Assembly (NCBI GenBank): GCA_946965045.2
Contig: OX337240.1
Coordinates: 1,302,001-1,366,000, forward strand
Direction of reading: 5' to 3'
Length of the DNA stretch: 64,000 nucleotides
From: Epithemia pelagica
Taxonomy: Eukaryota; Protista; Bacillariophyta
The translations under genes were made by a program, and so were the position numbers. Position 1 is the first letter of the stretch. The number at the start of each line of letters is the position of its first letter. The notes beneath the pieces are model-generated. The model was not told the DNA's origin, ran no database searches, and saw only the letters and a program-made list of their open reading frames with translations. This document shows, piece by piece, positions 1 through 11,124 of the stretch.

Positions 1-597
1 ATTCATTTCTATGGAATGGTATAGTAGTTAAGTAAAGTAGTACGATGAGATTTGTCTGTAGAAAAGTAGCAAAGTAGAATGTTAACAAATAATCAGTGTA
101 CTTAATAGTAACTAAGTAAAGTAGGTGGATAAAATATGTACACTTAGAAGTAGCTAAGTATTCTAAATAACGTTTATTAGTTACTACACAGCTCTGACAA
201 TAGGACGACGGAAAATGACTCGAGAAGAAACCAACATAACAAGGAGAGCCAAACATAAAAGATCGTATGCCACGGTAGCCAAGCCTGTCTGATTGTCTCG
301 AATGCTCAAGTGTGACGGAAGTTGGCTCAGCACGGGGTTGCACTTGTCGGCCATTCAATGGTTGTCGAGCAATGGGTTTCCTGCCCGGTCTCTGACTGGA
401 AACAATGCGAGATGCAACAACCAACTGGATGGATCATTCATGAGGGAGGGAGTGAGGGGGTGTAAGGAGGTCAGGGATTAAGGACCAGCATTCTCACTAC
501 CAAGACTACAGCGCTGTTTCGTGAACCCGCTCGGATCGACCCAAACCAAATGACAAAGTGTCCGGTGTGTTAGATTGAGGGGGGTAAGTTTCATTTG

Positions 598-4927: not shown

Positions 4928-7024
4928 ATGAGTGAAGCTGAAGAGCAAGCCGAACCGAAAACTTCCGAAGAAGATGTAGCAGTGAAACAAGAATCGGAAG
5001 AGACAGGACCTGAACAAGAAGGGAAACCTGAAGATGTTGAAGGGGGTGTGCCAGAACAGCAAGATGCTGAAGAACCACAGCATCCACCAGAAGCCTCATC
5101 GGATGATCCTGCTGGCAGTGAAGGAATGCAGGGAGGTGGGGAAATGACATCGGATGCACCGGGCCCTTCCGATGGTGGTGCACCAGAAGGGCAAGCCGAT
5201 GCACCCATGAATACAGAAGAGTACACAAAGACTTCCGAATCCACTGATCCTTCCTCTTCGCAACCTCCTCCAAATTCGACGGTGGAAGGTAGTGATCAAC
5301 AACCTCCTCCAGCTGGAGGAGAAGACACGCAACCACCTTCGGATCAGCCACCGCATCCTCCCTTTGGATCTCCCCCTCATGGAGGAGCAGGAGAGGGATT
5401 TCCTCCACCACCAGGGAAGGACGGGCAAGCTGCTCCTGGAGGGCATCCTACAGCACCCTTCACTCCAGGCCGACCTGGTGCAGAAGGGTCCGATGCCCCT
5501 CCCCCCTACCCACCACCGCCGGGTGGAGACGCTTCACGAGGGGGTGGACCCCCGCCTCCTCCTCATTATCCCGGATATCCTCCTCCGCATGGATCGCCTG
5601 CTCATGGCCACCATGGTTACTATCCACCGCACATGTACCCCCCTCCTCCTCCTCCGCCTGGTGAAGGAAGCGGGTCCTATCCTCCGCGAGGCTACGAAGG
5701 GCAACCTCCCCCACCACCCTATGGATACCCTGGACCTCCTCCTCCTGGCTATCCACCCTACCCGATGCCTCCTTATATGTATTCTCCCTATGGACAACAT
5801 CCGATGTATGGACAACCTCCGCCCCACCATCATCCACACCATCCACCTCCTCATTATCCGTATGGTCCTGGAGGATCATCTGATCCCAGTCGCTATCCGC
5901 CACCCCCGAATCAAGATGATCCCAACGCTCCTCCGCATTATGGCCGACAGGATGGTCGAGGCGATTCTAGAAGAGACGACAAGGCCTCTGGTCCCTACGA
6001 TGACAACGACAAGGTGGCCAAGGGAGGCGACGATGAGGATGATGACGACGGAGAAATGGGCGCGGGTGTCTCGGCGAGATTAAAAACCTACATCAAGCCA
6101 CGCATTCCGTCGACGCAAGAAGTGTTGGATCGGAGAGCACGCAAGAACGCACAATCTCGGTCGCGAGCTTCGAAACTAAGGGGGCGAATTGGTGATATCG
6201 AAAAAAAGGATGCCGAAGAACGCAACGAAGAAGAGCGGCATTTGTGGTCGCAGTACGAAGCTCGCCGTAGAAGAAAAAATGATCGTTCCAGAGAACGAGC
6301 TCTGGAAAAGAAGGAAGAGATTGATCGTATCCTCGCCAAACCTGAGAAGAAGCGGACTAAAATCGAGAAGCAGTTTCTCGAGACCGCCTTATCAGCCAAA
6401 AAACGCAAGAATGAAGGTGATCGTCTTCGAAGACAACGTTTGAAGGAACTTGGACTCTCGACCAAGGGAACTGGCGTCAAGCCAGGTGTCTCGGCCAGAG
6501 GTCCTTTACCACCACAGTATCAGCACTCGACGGCTCCACCCGGCTATGGAGGACACCACATGCCTCCTCCACCACCCGGTAGTGATATTCCCATGTCTCC
6601 GCTCCCTTCGGTTCCCCCACACCATTATGGCCATGCTCCCTATCCGCAATCTCCTGGTACTTTTGGATCTCCTGGATTAATGAATAGGGGATTCTCACCA
6701 CATCGACATGCAACTCCTGGACGACACGATCCTTCCATGCCGTACATGCCCGGTCCACAGACCTACGATGGCCAGTCGCCGGGTGGTCGGCCACTAGGAT
6801 CGCACATGTCGCTTCCCCCTTCGTCTTCACGTGTGGAACAAAGACGGAACCCGGATGGATCCATGAGTATTTCGATTGGTGGATCCAACCAGGGTGGTCC
6901 TTCCTTTGGCGGGGAGGCACCACCAGAAGGGGACAATGTGGCGGACAATGACAACGCCATGATGGATCAGAATGATGGCGAAGGAGATGATGCAGGAGAG
7001 AGGAAAGACGAAGCGACTGGATGA
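4928..7024 (+). CDS. Pro/Gly/His/Tyr-rich protein (698 aa) with a central triple basic helical repeat; putative DNA-binding regulator
   Basis: Long clean ORF with acidic N-terminus and prion-like Pro-rich flanks. The core at 6131-6445 has three RKNxx[SD]RxR motifs 44 aa apart. Confidence 0.8.
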   Translation: MSEAEEQAEPKTSEEDVAVKQESEETGPEQEGKPEDVEGGVPEQQDAEEPQHPPEASSDDPAGSEGMQGGGEMTSDAPGPSDGGAPEGQADAPMNTEEYTKTSESTDPSSSQPPPNSTVEGSDQQPPPAGGEDTQPPSDQPPHPPFGSPPHGGAGEGFPPPPGKDGQAAPGGHPTAPFTPGRPGAEGSDAPPPYPPPPGGDASRGGGPPPPPHYPGYPPPHGSPAHGHHGYYPPHMYPPPPPPPGEGSGSYPPRGYEGQPPPPPYGYPGPPPPGYPPYPMPPYMYSPYGQHPMYGQPPPHHHPHHPPPHYPYGPGGSSDPSRYPPPPNQDDPNAPPHYGRQDGRGDSRRDDKASGPYDDNDKVAKGGDDEDDDDGEMGAGVSARLKTYIKPRIPSTQEVLDRRARKNAQSRSRASKLRGRIGDIEKKDAEERNEEERHLWSQYEARRRRKNDRSRERALEKKEEIDRILAKPEKKRTKIEKQFLETALSAKKRKNEGDRLRRQRLKELGLSTKGTGVKPGVSARGPLPPQYQHSTAPPGYGGHHMPPPPPGSDIPMSPLPSVPPHHYGHAPYPQSPGTFGSPGLMNRGFSPHRHATPGRHDPSMPYMPGPQTYDGQSPGGRPLGSHMSLPPSSSRVEQRRNPDGSMSISIGGSNQGGPSFGGEAPPEGDNVADNDNAMMDQNDGEGDDAGERKDEATG

Positions 7025-7334
7025 GTGTTGAGGGATGGTCGTGGAAGGAAGGGAGAATCTCTGTCTACGAGAAGCCACGGCGGAATCGCCATGCCAGACA
7101 GAGGAGTGTCCATTTGAAAAGTGTTTGTACCTTTGTTGCTAAGATAAGACAGTGGTGTTGGGCAAGGCTTAACCGTAGTGATTAATCGTTCAGTGTTCAA
7201 AGAAGTCAATGTTTACTTGATAGAAAAAAGAGATGATGGGGAACAGCAACAATAGGCAACTAGTCGACCGAATGAGGTTTTCGACGGTCTAAGCATGTGG
7301 TTCGTCCTAGAACGATGAAAAGAAATACATACGG

Positions 7335-8138
7335 TCATTCGTCGTCGTCCATGGATAAATCGATGATTTCGCTTTCGTGTGGTCGCGGGGGTTTGCTCTT
7401 TTTCGAGAAGCGAGGCGTGGCAGTCACATCATCTGTTCTCCCATGAACAATCCGCTCGCCCAAAACCGACTTTCTTGCAACAGTCTTTTTTCGTTTTTTG
7501 CCGACTAAGCCTAGAGTGTGTTCCTTATTTGGCAAGCTGCCACGGAGATTGTCTGATTGCCTCTTCGACTTACTTCTGAGTTTATCAGAGTTTCCTGTCC
7601 AACCATCTCCAATTAAGCTTAAGTCGTTTCTTCCATTATTCTTCTCTGCACTAATGTGTCCACACTTCTCATTCGATGCACTATGAGTGTCTTTCTGTTC
7701 TGCATTTGAAGGAGCAAATCGATCAGGTTCTTGTCGAGCATCTCCCATGTCAATCACTTGTCGTTCGATTGCCTTCACACGTGCTTCCGAATTCTTTGTC
7801 ATTGATCTTATGGGAGACTTTCGAGTTTGGGGGGTTATGCTAAAAGTTTCTGGAGAGCAATAAAGGGAATCCCCCTTTTCCATGATATGATCTTTTGATT
7901 CCCGCTCTTGTTTTCCATCATCTTGGTATTGTTTATGTGACGCCATTGTATGTAAATTGGTGGTGCACTCGAAATCACCCATGTTCCTCACGTAATCTTT
8001 GGCGTCTTCCTTGGTGGCTAGAGACAATAATGGGATTTGTGTCGTTGGAGAACTCCATTGTGCAGCACTTTCACTAGCTGTCATGTGAGAACAGCATTTC
8101 ACGCCTACATATGCCATGTCGCTCTCAGTTGATGCCAT
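7335..8138 (-). CDS. Hypothetical protein with basic NLS-like stretch and C-terminal SUMO-interacting-like motif
   Basis: 267-aa ORF containing GKKRKK and ending EIIDLSMDDDE. Start uncertain (ATGs at 8138, 8117, 8084). Confidence 0.6.
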   Translation of the reverse strand: MASTESDMAYVGVKCCSHMTASESAAQWSSPTTQIPLLSLATKEDAKDYVRNMGDFECTTNLHTMASHKQYQDDGKQERESKDHIMEKGDSLYCSPETFSITPQTRKSPIRSMTKNSEARVKAIERQVIDMGDARQEPDRFAPSNAEQKDTHSASNEKCGHISAEKNNGRNDLSLIGDGWTGNSDKLRSKSKRQSDNLRGSLPNKEHTLGLVGKKRKKTVARKSVLGERIVHGRTDDVTATPRFSKKSKPPRPHESEIIDLSMDDDE

Positions 8139-9303
8139 CGCTGGTGTCGATACTTCCTGGTCGATGTGATCACTGGTAGAAGGGAAGGCAAGTTGGAATT
8201 TTGTCCGGGAGGCTGGTCCAGGTTGTCATATTGCTCGAATCGAACACGGCAACGCTTCGTGGGTATTGGAATGGGAGTCGGTTCATCCCGATGAATATGA
8301 GATTGATGAAACCGAAGGAGTACCAGATTTGGCCGTTGATCCAGATGAACAGACGCTTACGCTATGCAATTTGCGGGAGGATCCTGTCGTTGCTTATATC
8401 ACAGTGTATGGAAACGCACTGAGAGGAAAGAATGGGATTTCATTGAAGCAAGGATCAACCACAGACAAGGAGGGCCAGCAAACTCCATGTACAACGTTGA
8501 TTATTCTATGCCCGGCCTATACGTTCGCACATTTGTGCTATGTGGACATGGATGCTTCTTCTCCGTCGACAGTGATTCAAGACCTACAAATTGATTCCGA
8601 TGTGCAGGTATGGAATCGTCATACCAAACCTGATGATGAGCATGAACAGCCAATTGGGTTCCCTCTTCAGGGTGGGCCTTTCTTATGTACCCAAGGAGAA
8701 GGAGGGCATCTGACTCACTTCTTTGCAGGAAATCAACATGCAATCGATTTTCAGTGTCCCAAAGGGACGCCACTCCTGGCGGTTGGTGACGGAGAGGTGG
8801 TGCAAGCTCAAGACAAACATGAACACCTTTCAGGCATTGCTGTCTCTAACCTGTTTTCGTGGAATTCAATTCTTCTTCGGCTAGATCCTCTACCAAGTGT
8901 GCCTTTATCGTCCTCTCAATCAGGGGGGAAAGAAAAGGCCGCGGCGGACACTGAACACAATGCGACGGTTGTGGACGCATTATTCGTGGAATATGTTCAT
9001 ATTTCCTCTTGTCAGGTTAAGGTTGGAAATCGAGTTTCGAAAGGGCAGATTATTGGAACTTCTGGTGGAATTGGTAAGTAGTACGTGGATGATTTACCTC
9101 CCAAAGTGGAGTTTCCTTACCTTTTCAACCCTCCTTGACCAGGCTTTTCTCCGGAGGACCATCTCCATTTCGCTGGATACAGATCCGCAGATGATAATGC
9201 TGCAACGGTTCGTCTTCGTTTCGAAAAGCAGACTAGCAATGATGGTGAAATTTTCTATCCTCGTGCTGGGACTCGTTACAACTGTCATGGTGAAGTAAAG
9301 TGA
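8116..9303 (+). CDS. M23 (LytM/lysostaphin-like) zinc metallopeptidase-domain protein
   Basis: GGPFLCTQGEGGHLTH...HAIDFQCPKGTPLLAVGDGEV, FVEYVHI, VKVGNRVSKGQIIGTSG. GT-AG intron 9074-9142 (phase 1) restores G-FSPEDHLHF (HxH). Stop 9301-9303. Frame is open from 8170; the 5' end is unresolved. Confidence 0.85.
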
Positions 9304-9840
9304 ATGCCCTTTCTCCACCTCCATCCCCGACTTTTTCTTGGCTCCTTAGCTATTCTTTTCACCTACTCGCTGTTTTCTACGCCATTCATTGGATCCAGTT
9401 CGGCCAGCTAAATCGTGGTTTGCGTGGTACCAAAGATTGCGTTATCGATGAAAGAGATGGCATACTGTTCCCAACTTATTTCGAGCTATTGATGAAAGGA
9501 CCTATTGTTCCATAATCGGTTGAGTTTGCACACAGTATTCAATTCATGGTTCGACTTAATCGCTGACAGCCACTGCACAAAGATAGAACCAGTAAATTGA
9601 AAATATTGATCCTCTGTGAGCACAACACGACGGGATCACAAAGGTCAGAATGTCATTTCATGGGCCGAGTTCCTGTGCATCACGTCGTAAAAACATATGA
9701 ATGACAAAATCCCTTAGTTTAGTTGGATTGACCATCTCGCTCCTTCTCTTTTGTCGCTCGTGATGGACTAGAAAACCTATCAGGCACTAGAATTGTGTAG
9801 CTAGACATGTCGTAAATTGTGTTGGTATATCATGCCATCA

Positions 9841-11124
9841 TTATGGCATAAAACGGGACGACCAGAGCTCAACACCAAAGAATTGGTTCCAGTTGCGCGG
9901 TGGAGGTGCTGTGAGGGAAAGGCCTGCCAAGGGTGAGGATAACGACGGCGCCGGTGGGTGGGCGCTTTCACTACGAATACTGGCCCTCGTGTGGTCGTCG
10001 TCGTCATCCTCATGATCGTCGTCGTCACGACAAGAAGAAGCACCGAAGAGAGGTTTGGATGTTCCCAATCGCAATTGTTCTGGTAACACGAGTCGAGACG
10101 CATGCAAGGCCACCGATTGGTCCGGCAAGGGCCGTTTTGTCAAGCCACTGTCGTATCGAACATCTCCCATGACAGGACACATGGCCACTTGTCCCAGCAA
10201 GGCCCGAATCATGTGACGTCGGCCTTGATGAGTGGTAATTTGAAGAACCACATATGGTGAGGAGGAGGAGGAAGACGACGACAATATGGGCAGTTCTTTC
10301 CATGTCAGAGAGCAGACTTGCCCCTTGTCACTTGATACGCTTTGTGTGGACCAACCGGTGCGAAGAACTGGTTCCATTTGTACCGTCCGTTGCTCTTGAG
10401 GGTGTGGCAACAGAATTCCCGACAGCTTATACTCGGTTGAGGAATCTACTGAACGGTGAGGGATGGTGGACGAATCGGTACTTCCATGCAATGCCATTTC
10501 ATCGTCATGATTAATCTCCCTTGTCTTTGTGTCGTCAAGGAGATTGGAAGCCGCAATTAAGCTTGGAATATGACGAGCGTAGACAACGCAATGATAAATT
10601 TTGCGTATTTGTTGCCATTGGGTTTGGATTCGACTCGCAGCTTTGCTCGTTTTTCCGAAAAGCAAGACACCCGAACACGGTTGGTCTAGTCGATGCAATG
10701 GCAACAGAAACTGCCCTTGACTTCCTCCACCCCAGTTCTGTTCTTGACAGTATGTCAAGAGGCATTGTTTACTATTCCGTGGATCCGGTTGTTCATGACT
10801 TGTGTGACGAGTCTTGCGAGTATTGGGTACGGAATGCCATCCTGGTGGTTTGTGCACCGCCAACACATGATTGTTCGAAAACAGAATCGTAGGACGGTCC
10901 AAATGACGGGCAAATCGTCGTTCTCTTCGCCGCGAATGTTCTTCATCTCGTGCCACCAATGGTAGTGAGTATCCTTTCCTTGTAACTGGCGTGACGGGGC
11001 CCAGGATTTGAGCCTTGGTATAGTAGGACCTTCCTGAGGCACTTGGCAATGGATAAGAATGTGTTGGGGATCTACATTTCCAAGATAAAGGAGTGAAACA
11101 TGTTCTCCATTGATGCCTCTTCAT
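9841..11124 (-). CDS. RluA-family pseudouridine synthase
   Basis: Motifs KPPGW, HRLD (catalytic Asp), KIYHCVV, GRRHMIR, PVMGDVRY and ALHASRL. First ATG 11124. Confidence 0.92.
   Translation of the reverse strand: MKRHQWRTCFTPLSWKCRSPTHSYPLPSASGRSYYTKAQILGPVTPVTRKGYSLPLVARDEEHSRRRERRFARHLDRPTILFSNNHVLAVHKPPGWHSVPNTRKTRHTSHEQPDPRNSKQCLLTYCQEQNWGGGSQGQFLLPLHRLDQPCSGVLLFGKTSKAASRIQTQWQQIRKIYHCVVYARHIPSLIAASNLLDDTKTREINHDDEMALHGSTDSSTIPHRSVDSSTEYKLSGILLPHPQEQRTVQMEPVLRTGWSTQSVSSDKGQVCSLTWKELPILSSSSSSSSPYVVLQITTHQGRRHMIRALLGQVAMCPVMGDVRYDSGLTKRPLPDQSVALHASRLVLPEQLRLGTSKPLFGASSCRDDDDHEDDDDDHTRASIRSESAHPPAPSLSSPLAGLSLTAPPPRNWNQFFGVELWSSRFMP

Follow-up and report, generated by a model that had tools for sequence, protein, structure and literature searches.

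A 2022 review of the M23 peptidases counts 97% of their entries as bacterial and names a single mammalian member, the inactive LECT2 (PMC9662197). DipM is a known nuclear-encoded M23 protein of eukaryotes, with a plastid form in glaucophytes, charophytes and mosses (PMC4015805), while in the stramenopile Blastocystis M23B genes, which have been read as coding for lytic enzymes, are reported to reach 29 copies in some subtypes and to number none in another (PMC5608401). Here we analyze an M23 gene at positions 8170-9303 of the forward strand of a 64,000-nucleotide stretch of DNA from the diatom Epithemia pelagica (contig OX337240.1, positions 1,302,001 to 1,366,000), referred to below as the window. 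A preliminary description based on the letters of the window had proposed a bacterial-type peptidoglycan hydrolase, acquired horizontally and domesticated by diatoms, possibly for antibacterial or microbiome control, or else an enzyme with a new substrate. We find that this nuclear gene is a member of a eukaryotic family that is old and strongly conserved yet unstudied, with neither a paper on its two-domain M23 architecture in eukaryotes nor an experiment on any of its members found in the literature, and, as a second new result, that the allele in the window is missing its promoter and first 26 codons.

A two-domain M23 protein and its spread among eukaryotes

The M23 signature motifs listed in the preliminary description all occur in frame 1 of the + strand. 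Against Pfam PF01551, whose gathering score is 28.7 bits, exon 1 by itself reaches 42.7 bits (E 6.6e-11), and its best solved matches are M23 peptidases. Structural work was carried out on natural full-length orthologues, including P0004, which is 58% identical to the window exon 1. The AlphaFold model of P0004, calculated from 50 aligned sequences, has a mean predicted local distance difference test score (pLDDT) of 91.5 and a predicted template modeling score of 0.87, and its C-terminal half superimposes on EnvC (Z 13.5, root-mean-square deviation 2.6 over 123 residues), DipM (13.4), LytM (2b0p, 13.2) and lysostaphin (4lxc, 12.0), with a Foldseek probability of 1.00 for the M23 fold. Both the sequence and, as established on the orthologue, the core fold place the protein among the M23 peptidases, and 96 of 100 long family members match the Pfam M23 model. 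The N-terminal 150 residues of the P0004 model fold as a separate beta-sandwich that reaches a pLDDT of 93.4 when modeled alone, bearing out the distinct beta-rich N-terminal domain that had been noticed earlier. The protein is thus made up of two domains, an N-terminal beta-sandwich and a C-terminal M23/LytM zinc-peptidase domain. The former has no Pfam match and, compared both as part of the whole model and as a separate model, no convincing structural relative, the best hits (Z of 5.5-5.7, Foldseek E values above 0.06 with a best of 0.065) lying at the level of noise; assignments to topoisomerase VI B, a Leishmania protein and SMP-1 were dropped for the same reason. We take this domain for a predicted substrate- or partner-binding module.

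A word search with exon 1 returned 243 proteins, with E values down to 1e-200 and the best 120 at or below 1e-77; the named matches are all from diatoms and are 45-69% identical over their whole length, the N-terminal domain included. A profile of 50 diatom sequences was then compared with 1.84 billion representatives, giving 275 at E≤1e-30, and the best 150 of these score 190-571 bits and mostly cover both domains. The family is found in the choanoflagellates Salpingoeca kvevrii and S. punica and the ichthyosporean Sphaeroforma arctica, in the dinoflagellates Polarella glacialis and Biecheleria cincta and the alveolate Colpodella angusta, in the rhizarian Paulinella micropora, and among ochrophytes in Pelagophyceae CCMP2097, Phaeothamnion, Discosporangium, Choristocarpus, Pteridomonas, the centric diatom Proboscia inermis, the araphid diatom Synedropsis and many raphid diatoms. 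In addition, a Chlorophyta-dominated cluster of the ESM Atlas matches the model with a template modeling (TM) score of 0.85 over 314 of 342 residues, so that the two-domain protein is present in five supergroup-level lineages of eukaryotes.

Full-length family proteins score 250-398 bits against a second profile that was built from 35 non-diatom members. The next sequences are P0323 (126 bits) and P0324 (116 bits), and ordinary actinobacterial M23 proteins reach at most 64 bits and align over the M23 part only. Named bacterial M23 models of NCBIfam give 15-48 bits against cut-offs of 250-900. A pattern search with the family alignment through 185,579 genomes of bacteria and archaea produced 37 matches of which none was confirmed by tblastn, a negative that is weak given how narrow the method is. 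In a quick maximum-likelihood tree of the M23 domain (162 columns, 79 rows) the 67 two-domain eukaryotic proteins form one clade apart from the bacterial M23s (95 in the Shimodaira-Hasegawa-like approximate likelihood ratio test). Within it the 19 diatom-type rows are a nested clade (98), in which the window species pairs with Epithemia clementina as its sister (99). P0323 and P0324 constitute a weak, long-branched sister group (86). The comparison with bacterial and algal M23 proteins that had been called for earlier accordingly separates the eukaryotic proteins from the bacterial ones, with poor resolution inside the eukaryotic clade.

Taken together with a G+C content of 47.2% for the gene against 47.1% for the window and with a spliceosomal intron, the five lineages and the nested position of the diatoms mean that the data give no support to a recent bacterial source for the diatom gene, and the idea of a horizontally acquired, domesticated diatom gene does not hold up. 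The spread may reflect vertical descent with losses or old transfers between eukaryotes, and the two are not separable because of the poor resolution inside the clade. Vertical inheritance across eukaryotes together with a housekeeping role had been named as grounds for abandoning the original proposal; the distribution is indeed of this kind, and no housekeeping role is known. A more general caution is that a 'bacterial-type' domain in an intron-containing gene does not imply lineage-specific gene transfer.

Active-site residues, leaders and accessory domains

In order to describe the active site we have counted residues over 321 family members, using the numbering of P0004. C181 and Q183 of the C-T-Q-G motif are kept in 317-318 members, H191 of T-H-F in 318/318, D201 of H-A-x-D in 317/318, H261 of Y-V-H in 313/313, and H292 and H294 of H-L-H in 304/305 and 305/305, respectively. 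H198, the histidine of H-A-x-D, is more variable (287 His, 15 Tyr, 11 Phe, 3 Asp), and 30 members have Tyr, Phe, Asp or Met at this position while keeping every other site. Conserved cysteines also stand at C31, C118, C134 and C204. HMMER aligns H198 and D201 with the HxxxD of lysostaphin by way of a one-residue deletion, leaving H-x2-D. The window protein carries the full set of these residues, including the catalytic histidines of Y-x-H and of the first position of H-x-H. In the window LTHFF is encoded at 8710-8724 (with the histidine of T-H-F at 8716-8718), QHAIDF at 8734-8751 (H-A-I-D at 8737-8748), GTPLLAVGDGEVV at 8764-8802, EYVHI at 8989-9003 (catalytic histidine at 8998-9000) and KGQIIG at 9040-9057, all in frame 1 of the + strand and in exon 1, and HLH follows at 9160-9168 in exon 2. 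Such a set of motifs is far beyond chance.

As regards the metal, for which M23 peptidases use H-x3-D and the second histidine of H-x-H, the Asp and H-x-H are invariant here, as is the upstream histidine, whereas the histidine of H-x2-D is the one missing from the 30 otherwise intact members. The canonical first histidine, H198, appears from these counts to be dispensable. Because H191 is invariant while H198 has been lost in 30 members, and because the T-H motif recurs in P0323 and P0324, it is probably H191, nine residues before the Asp, that replaces the canonical residue as the first zinc ligand. The loop that bears H191 and H198 is the least confident part of the domain in the P0004 model (pLDDT 75-83). 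The pattern of invariance argues for an active enzyme and not for a degenerate LytM factor.

The N-termini were analyzed in the 252 members for which they are complete. A polybasic leader, defined as at least six Lys or Arg in some 15-residue stretch before the first domain, is found in 192 of them (76%), and a hydrophobic N-terminal run in only 4. At least one of these four, P0061, has the usual MGRK start further in, so that its hydrophobic run looks like an artefact of the gene model. The earlier remark that the gene has no obvious signal peptide is in agreement with what is seen both in the gene and across the family; the intact allele of the window species, described below, has neither a signal peptide nor an upstream in-frame ATG. 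The NCBI model of P0003 from Epithemia clementina starts with a 27-residue hydrophobic extension, MKHRFALLVLLTKAATI..., placed before the conserved M-A-P-R polybasic start. The extension may stem from faulty gene prediction, or else may be a signal peptide that arose in this lineage, whose cyanobacterial endosymbiont is walled; nothing like it precedes the intact allele of the window species.

A Pfam scan of 100 longer members returned as accessory domains BTHB (3 members) and the ribonucleoprotein-type zinc finger zf-RRPl_C4 (1 member) and no others, with no wall-targeting module (LysM, SH3b, OapA or peptidoglycan-binding) among them. BTHB is the domain with which FKBP25, a nuclear protein that associates with pre-60S particles, binds double-stranded RNA (PMC5714180, PMC4114681). 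One member of 1206 residues begins with a C-x8-C-x5-C-x3-H pattern of the CCCH type. Lineage-specific fusions to BTHB, to a CCCH-type finger and to a class I/II aminotransferase occur among P0216, P0298, P0300, P0234 and P0322, the aminotransferase case possibly being two genes that the gene caller has merged. With export signals rare, no wall module and no match to an equivalog model, the family does not look like one of secreted or periplasmic peptidoglycan hydrolases, and a role in antibacterial or microbiome control, as had been suggested, is not supported. Because polybasic leaders or RNA-binding domains stand where signal peptides and wall modules would be expected, we infer an intracellular, non-peptidoglycan role, with the protein probably nuclear or associated with ribonucleoprotein.

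The gene in the window and its truncated allele

In a scan of open reading frames (ORFs), frame 1 of the + strand has no stop between 8170 and 9081, directly after a TGA at 8167-8169. Position 8170, given as the start of the feature in the preliminary description, is correct as the opening of the frame but is not a start codon; exon 1 has a single in-frame ATG, codon 127 at 8548, and the true start is missing from the window allele. As present in the window, exon 1 extends over 8170-9073 and is translated to 9072 (301 residues), with orthologue-like sequence (ASWNF...) from approximately 8188 onward and 99% identity to P0001, its closest database protein. The family-specific beta-sandwich is encoded at 8194-8664 (WNFV..AGPGC..CN..C.T.I.LCP..F.HLC..SDVQ.W), as delimited with the AlphaFold models of P0004, and the first part of the M23/LytM domain at 8665-9073, as given by Pfam, by profile alignment to lysostaphin and by the orthologue model, with a variable low-complexity loop at about 8890-8980. 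A phase 1 spliceosomal intron of 69 nucleotides (GTAAGT...CAG) follows at 9074-9142. Exon 2 (9143-9303, + strand, 52 codons) begins FSPEDHLHF, completes the M23 domain and closes with a conserved P.AG..Y..G tail at the C-terminus and the TGA stop at 9301-9303.

Four public runs of the same organism, X1 to X4, contain this stretch and were compared over window positions 6900-10000. X1, X2 and X4 are DNA-like, with contigs of up to 509 kb, both alleles and no splice joint. In X3, on the other hand, a contig of 1185 nucleotides aligns to 8158-9072 and resumes at 9142-9411, skipping 69 letters with GT..AG ends, and the depth is strongly uneven (362, 93, 10); from these two properties we infer that X3 is RNA. 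The same spliced contig gives a 3' untranslated region at 9304-9411. Orthologues run without interruption across the site (GGIG-FSPE[DP]HLHF, for example GGIG-FSPEDHLHF in P0003), and the intron holds two differences between the window allele and the other allele, L001. Because the X3 contig skips 9074-9142 and the orthologues are continuous there, the intron is real, as had been proposed, and the final H-x-H is assembled only by splicing. The gene, its splicing and its transcription are shown by these data.

P0001 starts with MGPRRSSNKKSKKGGKSRGSNHPQPSE joined directly to ASWNF, and derives from L001, on contig ctg1362l of ENA assembly ERZ21939226. The start of this intact allele, MGPRR... 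with a polybasic leader, 26 codons in all, is missing from the window. Tblastn and an ungapped six-frame scan for the 27-residue leader of P0001 gave, in the window, a best match of 10/27 at an unrelated place. By blastn L001 matches the window only from its position 6080, equivalent to window 8186, and from there onward the two are 98-99% identical for at least 6.9 kb; upstream of 8186 the window is unrelated to the promoter and first 26 codons of L001. Both junctions occur in the DNA-like runs, the native leader (...GSNHPQPS) being joined to 8186, and the upstream block of the window continuing at 8187 into the M23 gene as well as into a third sequence. The joint to the third sequence is seen in all four runs, and forks and loose ends lie at 8186/8187 in X1 to X4. 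The same ENA assembly has the window-type arrangement on ctg1339l and the intact type on ctg1362l. A heterozygous structural variant with its breakpoint at 8186-8187 breaks the M23 gene after codon 26, and an intact copy is present on the other haplotype, making the truncation a natural half-dose allele. The variant, most simply a deletion in the window haplotype, has deprived the gene of its promoter along with its start codon and polybasic leader.

The window allele is still transcribed and correctly spliced, yet it has no evident start, and whether it is dead, that is a 5'-truncated pseudogene copy whose transcripts are read-through noise, is a question on which we lean only a little toward the negative. 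The loss of promoter, leader and start codon, the TGA at 8167-8169 that closes the frame ahead of a first in-frame ATG at codon 127, and the loss of two consensus residues, the D of G-D-R-V being replaced by N and the V of G-Q-V-I-G by I, all speak for a dead allele. Against it, the frame is intact over 354 codons with 13 coding differences between the alleles, 7 synonymous and 6 non-synonymous, splicing is correct, and this is the sole allele in the X3 contigs at 9228-9284; moreover, the truncation may be recent or an upstream exon may exist. A dead allele would in any case concern this copy and not the nature of the gene, and is compatible with the explanation of its function that we prefer below.

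Several further observations were made around the two alleles. At 9228-9284 the X3 contigs carry window-allele letters only, at five allelic sites for which X1 and X2 carry both, reflecting either allele-biased expression or a different clone, and X3 differs again at 9683-9752 by 5 substitutions and a 5-nucleotide deletion. Its depth upstream of the truncated gene (7516-8187) matches that of the gene itself, 93 as compared with 91, and rises to 362 over the 3' end (region 6900-7499) of a Pro-rich ORF of 698 residues at 4928-7024. The truncated allele may owe its transcripts to read-through, or to a promoter that lies within the foreign sequence upstream. A minus-strand ORF of 267 residues at 7335-8138 has no Pfam match. 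Further upstream a stretch of 246 nucleotides, 93% identical and in opposite orientation in the two alleles (window 202-438, L001 1-246), probably represents a dispersed repeat. L001 also has a short CCCATAT microsatellite at 5890-5960, some 50-100 nucleotides before the intact start codon.

Probable function and comparison with described systems

The explanation that we favor, and hold to be somewhat more likely than not, is that the product is an intracellular zinc endopeptidase of an old eukaryotic family with a substrate other than peptidoglycan. The protein would act within the cell, the nucleus or ribonucleoprotein being its most likely site, and would cut a protein or peptide substrate, for example at a Gly-rich or cross-link-like bond, and not a peptidoglycan wall. 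It would do so with a variant metal site in which the histidine of H-x2-D is dispensable and the invariant histidine nine residues before the Asp takes over. The nature of the substrate is speculation, with Gly-rich proteins or an isopeptide-like cross-link fitting known M23 chemistry. The 'new substrate' alternative of the preliminary description is the one that we come to prefer. A narrower and more tentative version, which we consider possible but would not bet on, is that of a pan-eukaryotic, active nuclear or ribonucleoprotein-associated M23 zinc endopeptidase with a relocated ligand (T-H...x9...D), recruited by its beta-sandwich and basic, nucleic-acid-binding leader to cut an endogenous target, for which Gly-rich RNA-binding proteins and an isopeptide-type cross-link would be candidates.

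A number of points weigh against this explanation. The fold and catalytic set match those of true peptidoglycan hydrolases, so that the protein may be active on peptidoglycan or muropeptides, and location, substrate and zinc ligand are all read from sequence features. Approximately 19% of the complete members are without a basic leader, including those of Salpingoeca kvevrii and the pelagophyte, and RNA-binding fusions are few, about 5 in roughly 100. The Lys-rich tail could equally attach to membranes or to anionic surfaces of bacteria. Met-Gly opens a third of the members, which could be N-myristoylated instead of imported into the nucleus, a candidate that was not adopted since Met-Gly begins only 80 of the 252 complete members and position 6 is rarely Ser or Thr. 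The tree is quick and uses 162 columns; bacteria are sparsely sampled in it and the outgroup branches are long, and the assignment of X3 as RNA comes from the contigs and depths and not from the run record.

Among the rivals, it is improbable that a bacterial M23 peptidoglycan hydrolase was gained horizontally and domesticated by diatoms to kill or manage nearby bacteria. Such an origin would account for an M23 fold and a full catalytic set like those of lysostaphin and LytM, in a family 97% bacterial by entry (PMC9662197), and diatoms do live alongside bacteria, whose envelopes the cationic leader could in principle bind. However, choanoflagellates, an ichthyosporean, dinoflagellates, Colpodella, Paulinella, brown algae, pelagophytes and green algae all have this two-domain protein, and the family forms one eukaryotic clade with the diatoms nested inside. 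There is no signal peptide and no wall-binding domain, the composition of the gene is native to the window, and the NCBIfam bacterial models remain far under their cut-offs. We attach a similarly small likelihood to an intracellular enzyme that works on peptidoglycan-derived material, either cytosolic muropeptides or the wall of the cyanobacterial endosymbiont in diatoms of the Epithemia/Rhopalodia type. The catalytic machinery is unchanged from that of peptidoglycan endopeptidases, the window species has as its sister Epithemia clementina, from a lineage that houses a cyanobacterial endosymbiont with a wall (PMC4015805), and P0003 of E. clementina has its extra hydrophobic extension; but that extension may be an artefact, the intact allele is without upstream in-frame ATG or signal peptide, and the same architecture is shared by eukaryotes, diatoms among them, in which this endosymbiont is absent. 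Nor is there a link to phagotrophy, the family being present in non-phagotrophic diatoms and brown algae.

Still smaller is the chance that the M23 fold serves as a non-catalytic binding or regulatory module in the manner of EnvC, NlpD or vertebrate LECT2. Degenerate M23 domains are common and include LECT2, the only characterized animal member (PMC9662197), and HxxxD has here been altered to Hx2D with its histidine lost in 30 members. Yet D201, H261, H292, H294 and H191 are invariant in more than 300 sequences from several supergroups, whereas degenerate LytM factors lose several of these residues.

What makes the intracellular endopeptidase that we prefer of more than local interest is the existence of a large, strongly conserved eukaryotic M23 family with a full catalytic set, whose hosts mostly have no peptidoglycan and whose proteins have no export signal. 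Were an endogenous substrate to be confirmed, this would be a new class of protease for eukaryotic cell biology and the first enzymatically active M23 protein with a eukaryotic housekeeping or regulatory role, and the idea is directly testable in transformable diatoms.

In relation to described systems, the nearest relatives outside the family are the 599-residue P0323 and P0324, a bacterial DUF4124+M23 protein of Pseudomonadota, which share Q-G-x-G-G-x-x-[ST]-H and a shortened x-A-x-D, with Tyr or Phe at the H198 position. They are without the eukaryotic N-terminal beta-sandwich and polybasic leader, P0324 having DUF4124 instead, and relatives of the DUF4124+M23 type give an Atlas TM score of 0.45, their place on the tree being that of a weak sister group. 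With long branches to P0323 and P0324 and a weak link, the data do not point to a donor. The tardigrade RvPeti metalloprotease (10.64898/2026.10.27.762089) was discarded as a relative on account of its different fold and HDD site, and the M23B expansion of Blastocystis (PMC5608401) is comparable as a case of M23 genes of unclear role in another stramenopile.

The LytM factors DipM, NlpD and EnvC share the M23/LytM fold (Z 13.4-13.5), and the corresponding NCBIfam models score far below their cut-offs on this protein. DipM differs by its LysM repeats and by being targeted to plastids, where it acts on plastid peptidoglycan; an identity with plastid DipM was rejected, there being no LysM and no signal peptide of the kind needed for import into diatom plastids, since the intact allele opens with MGPRR and a leader rich in Lys. 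EnvC and NlpD differ in that they are catalytically degenerate. The staphylococcal glycyl-glycine endopeptidases lysostaphin and LytM (MEROPS M23B) have the same fold, Asp, Y-x-H and H-x-H, and lysostaphin is the best solved match by profile (55 bits), with a nearly identical G-S-x-G-x-S-x-x-P-H-L-H-F stretch. They are, however, secreted proteins with SH3b wall-targeting domains and H-x3-D, whereas members of the family are without a signal peptide, combine a new beta-sandwich at the N-terminus with a polybasic leader, and have both H-x2-D, its histidine apparently dispensable, and an extra invariant C-T-Q-G...T-H motif. LECT2, finally, is a vertebrate cytokine with the M23 fold (Z 9.3 to 5b0h) that is secreted and single-domain and, with one catalytic histidine missing, is no peptidase (PMC9662197), whereas the eukaryotic family to which the window gene belongs keeps all of the catalytic residues.

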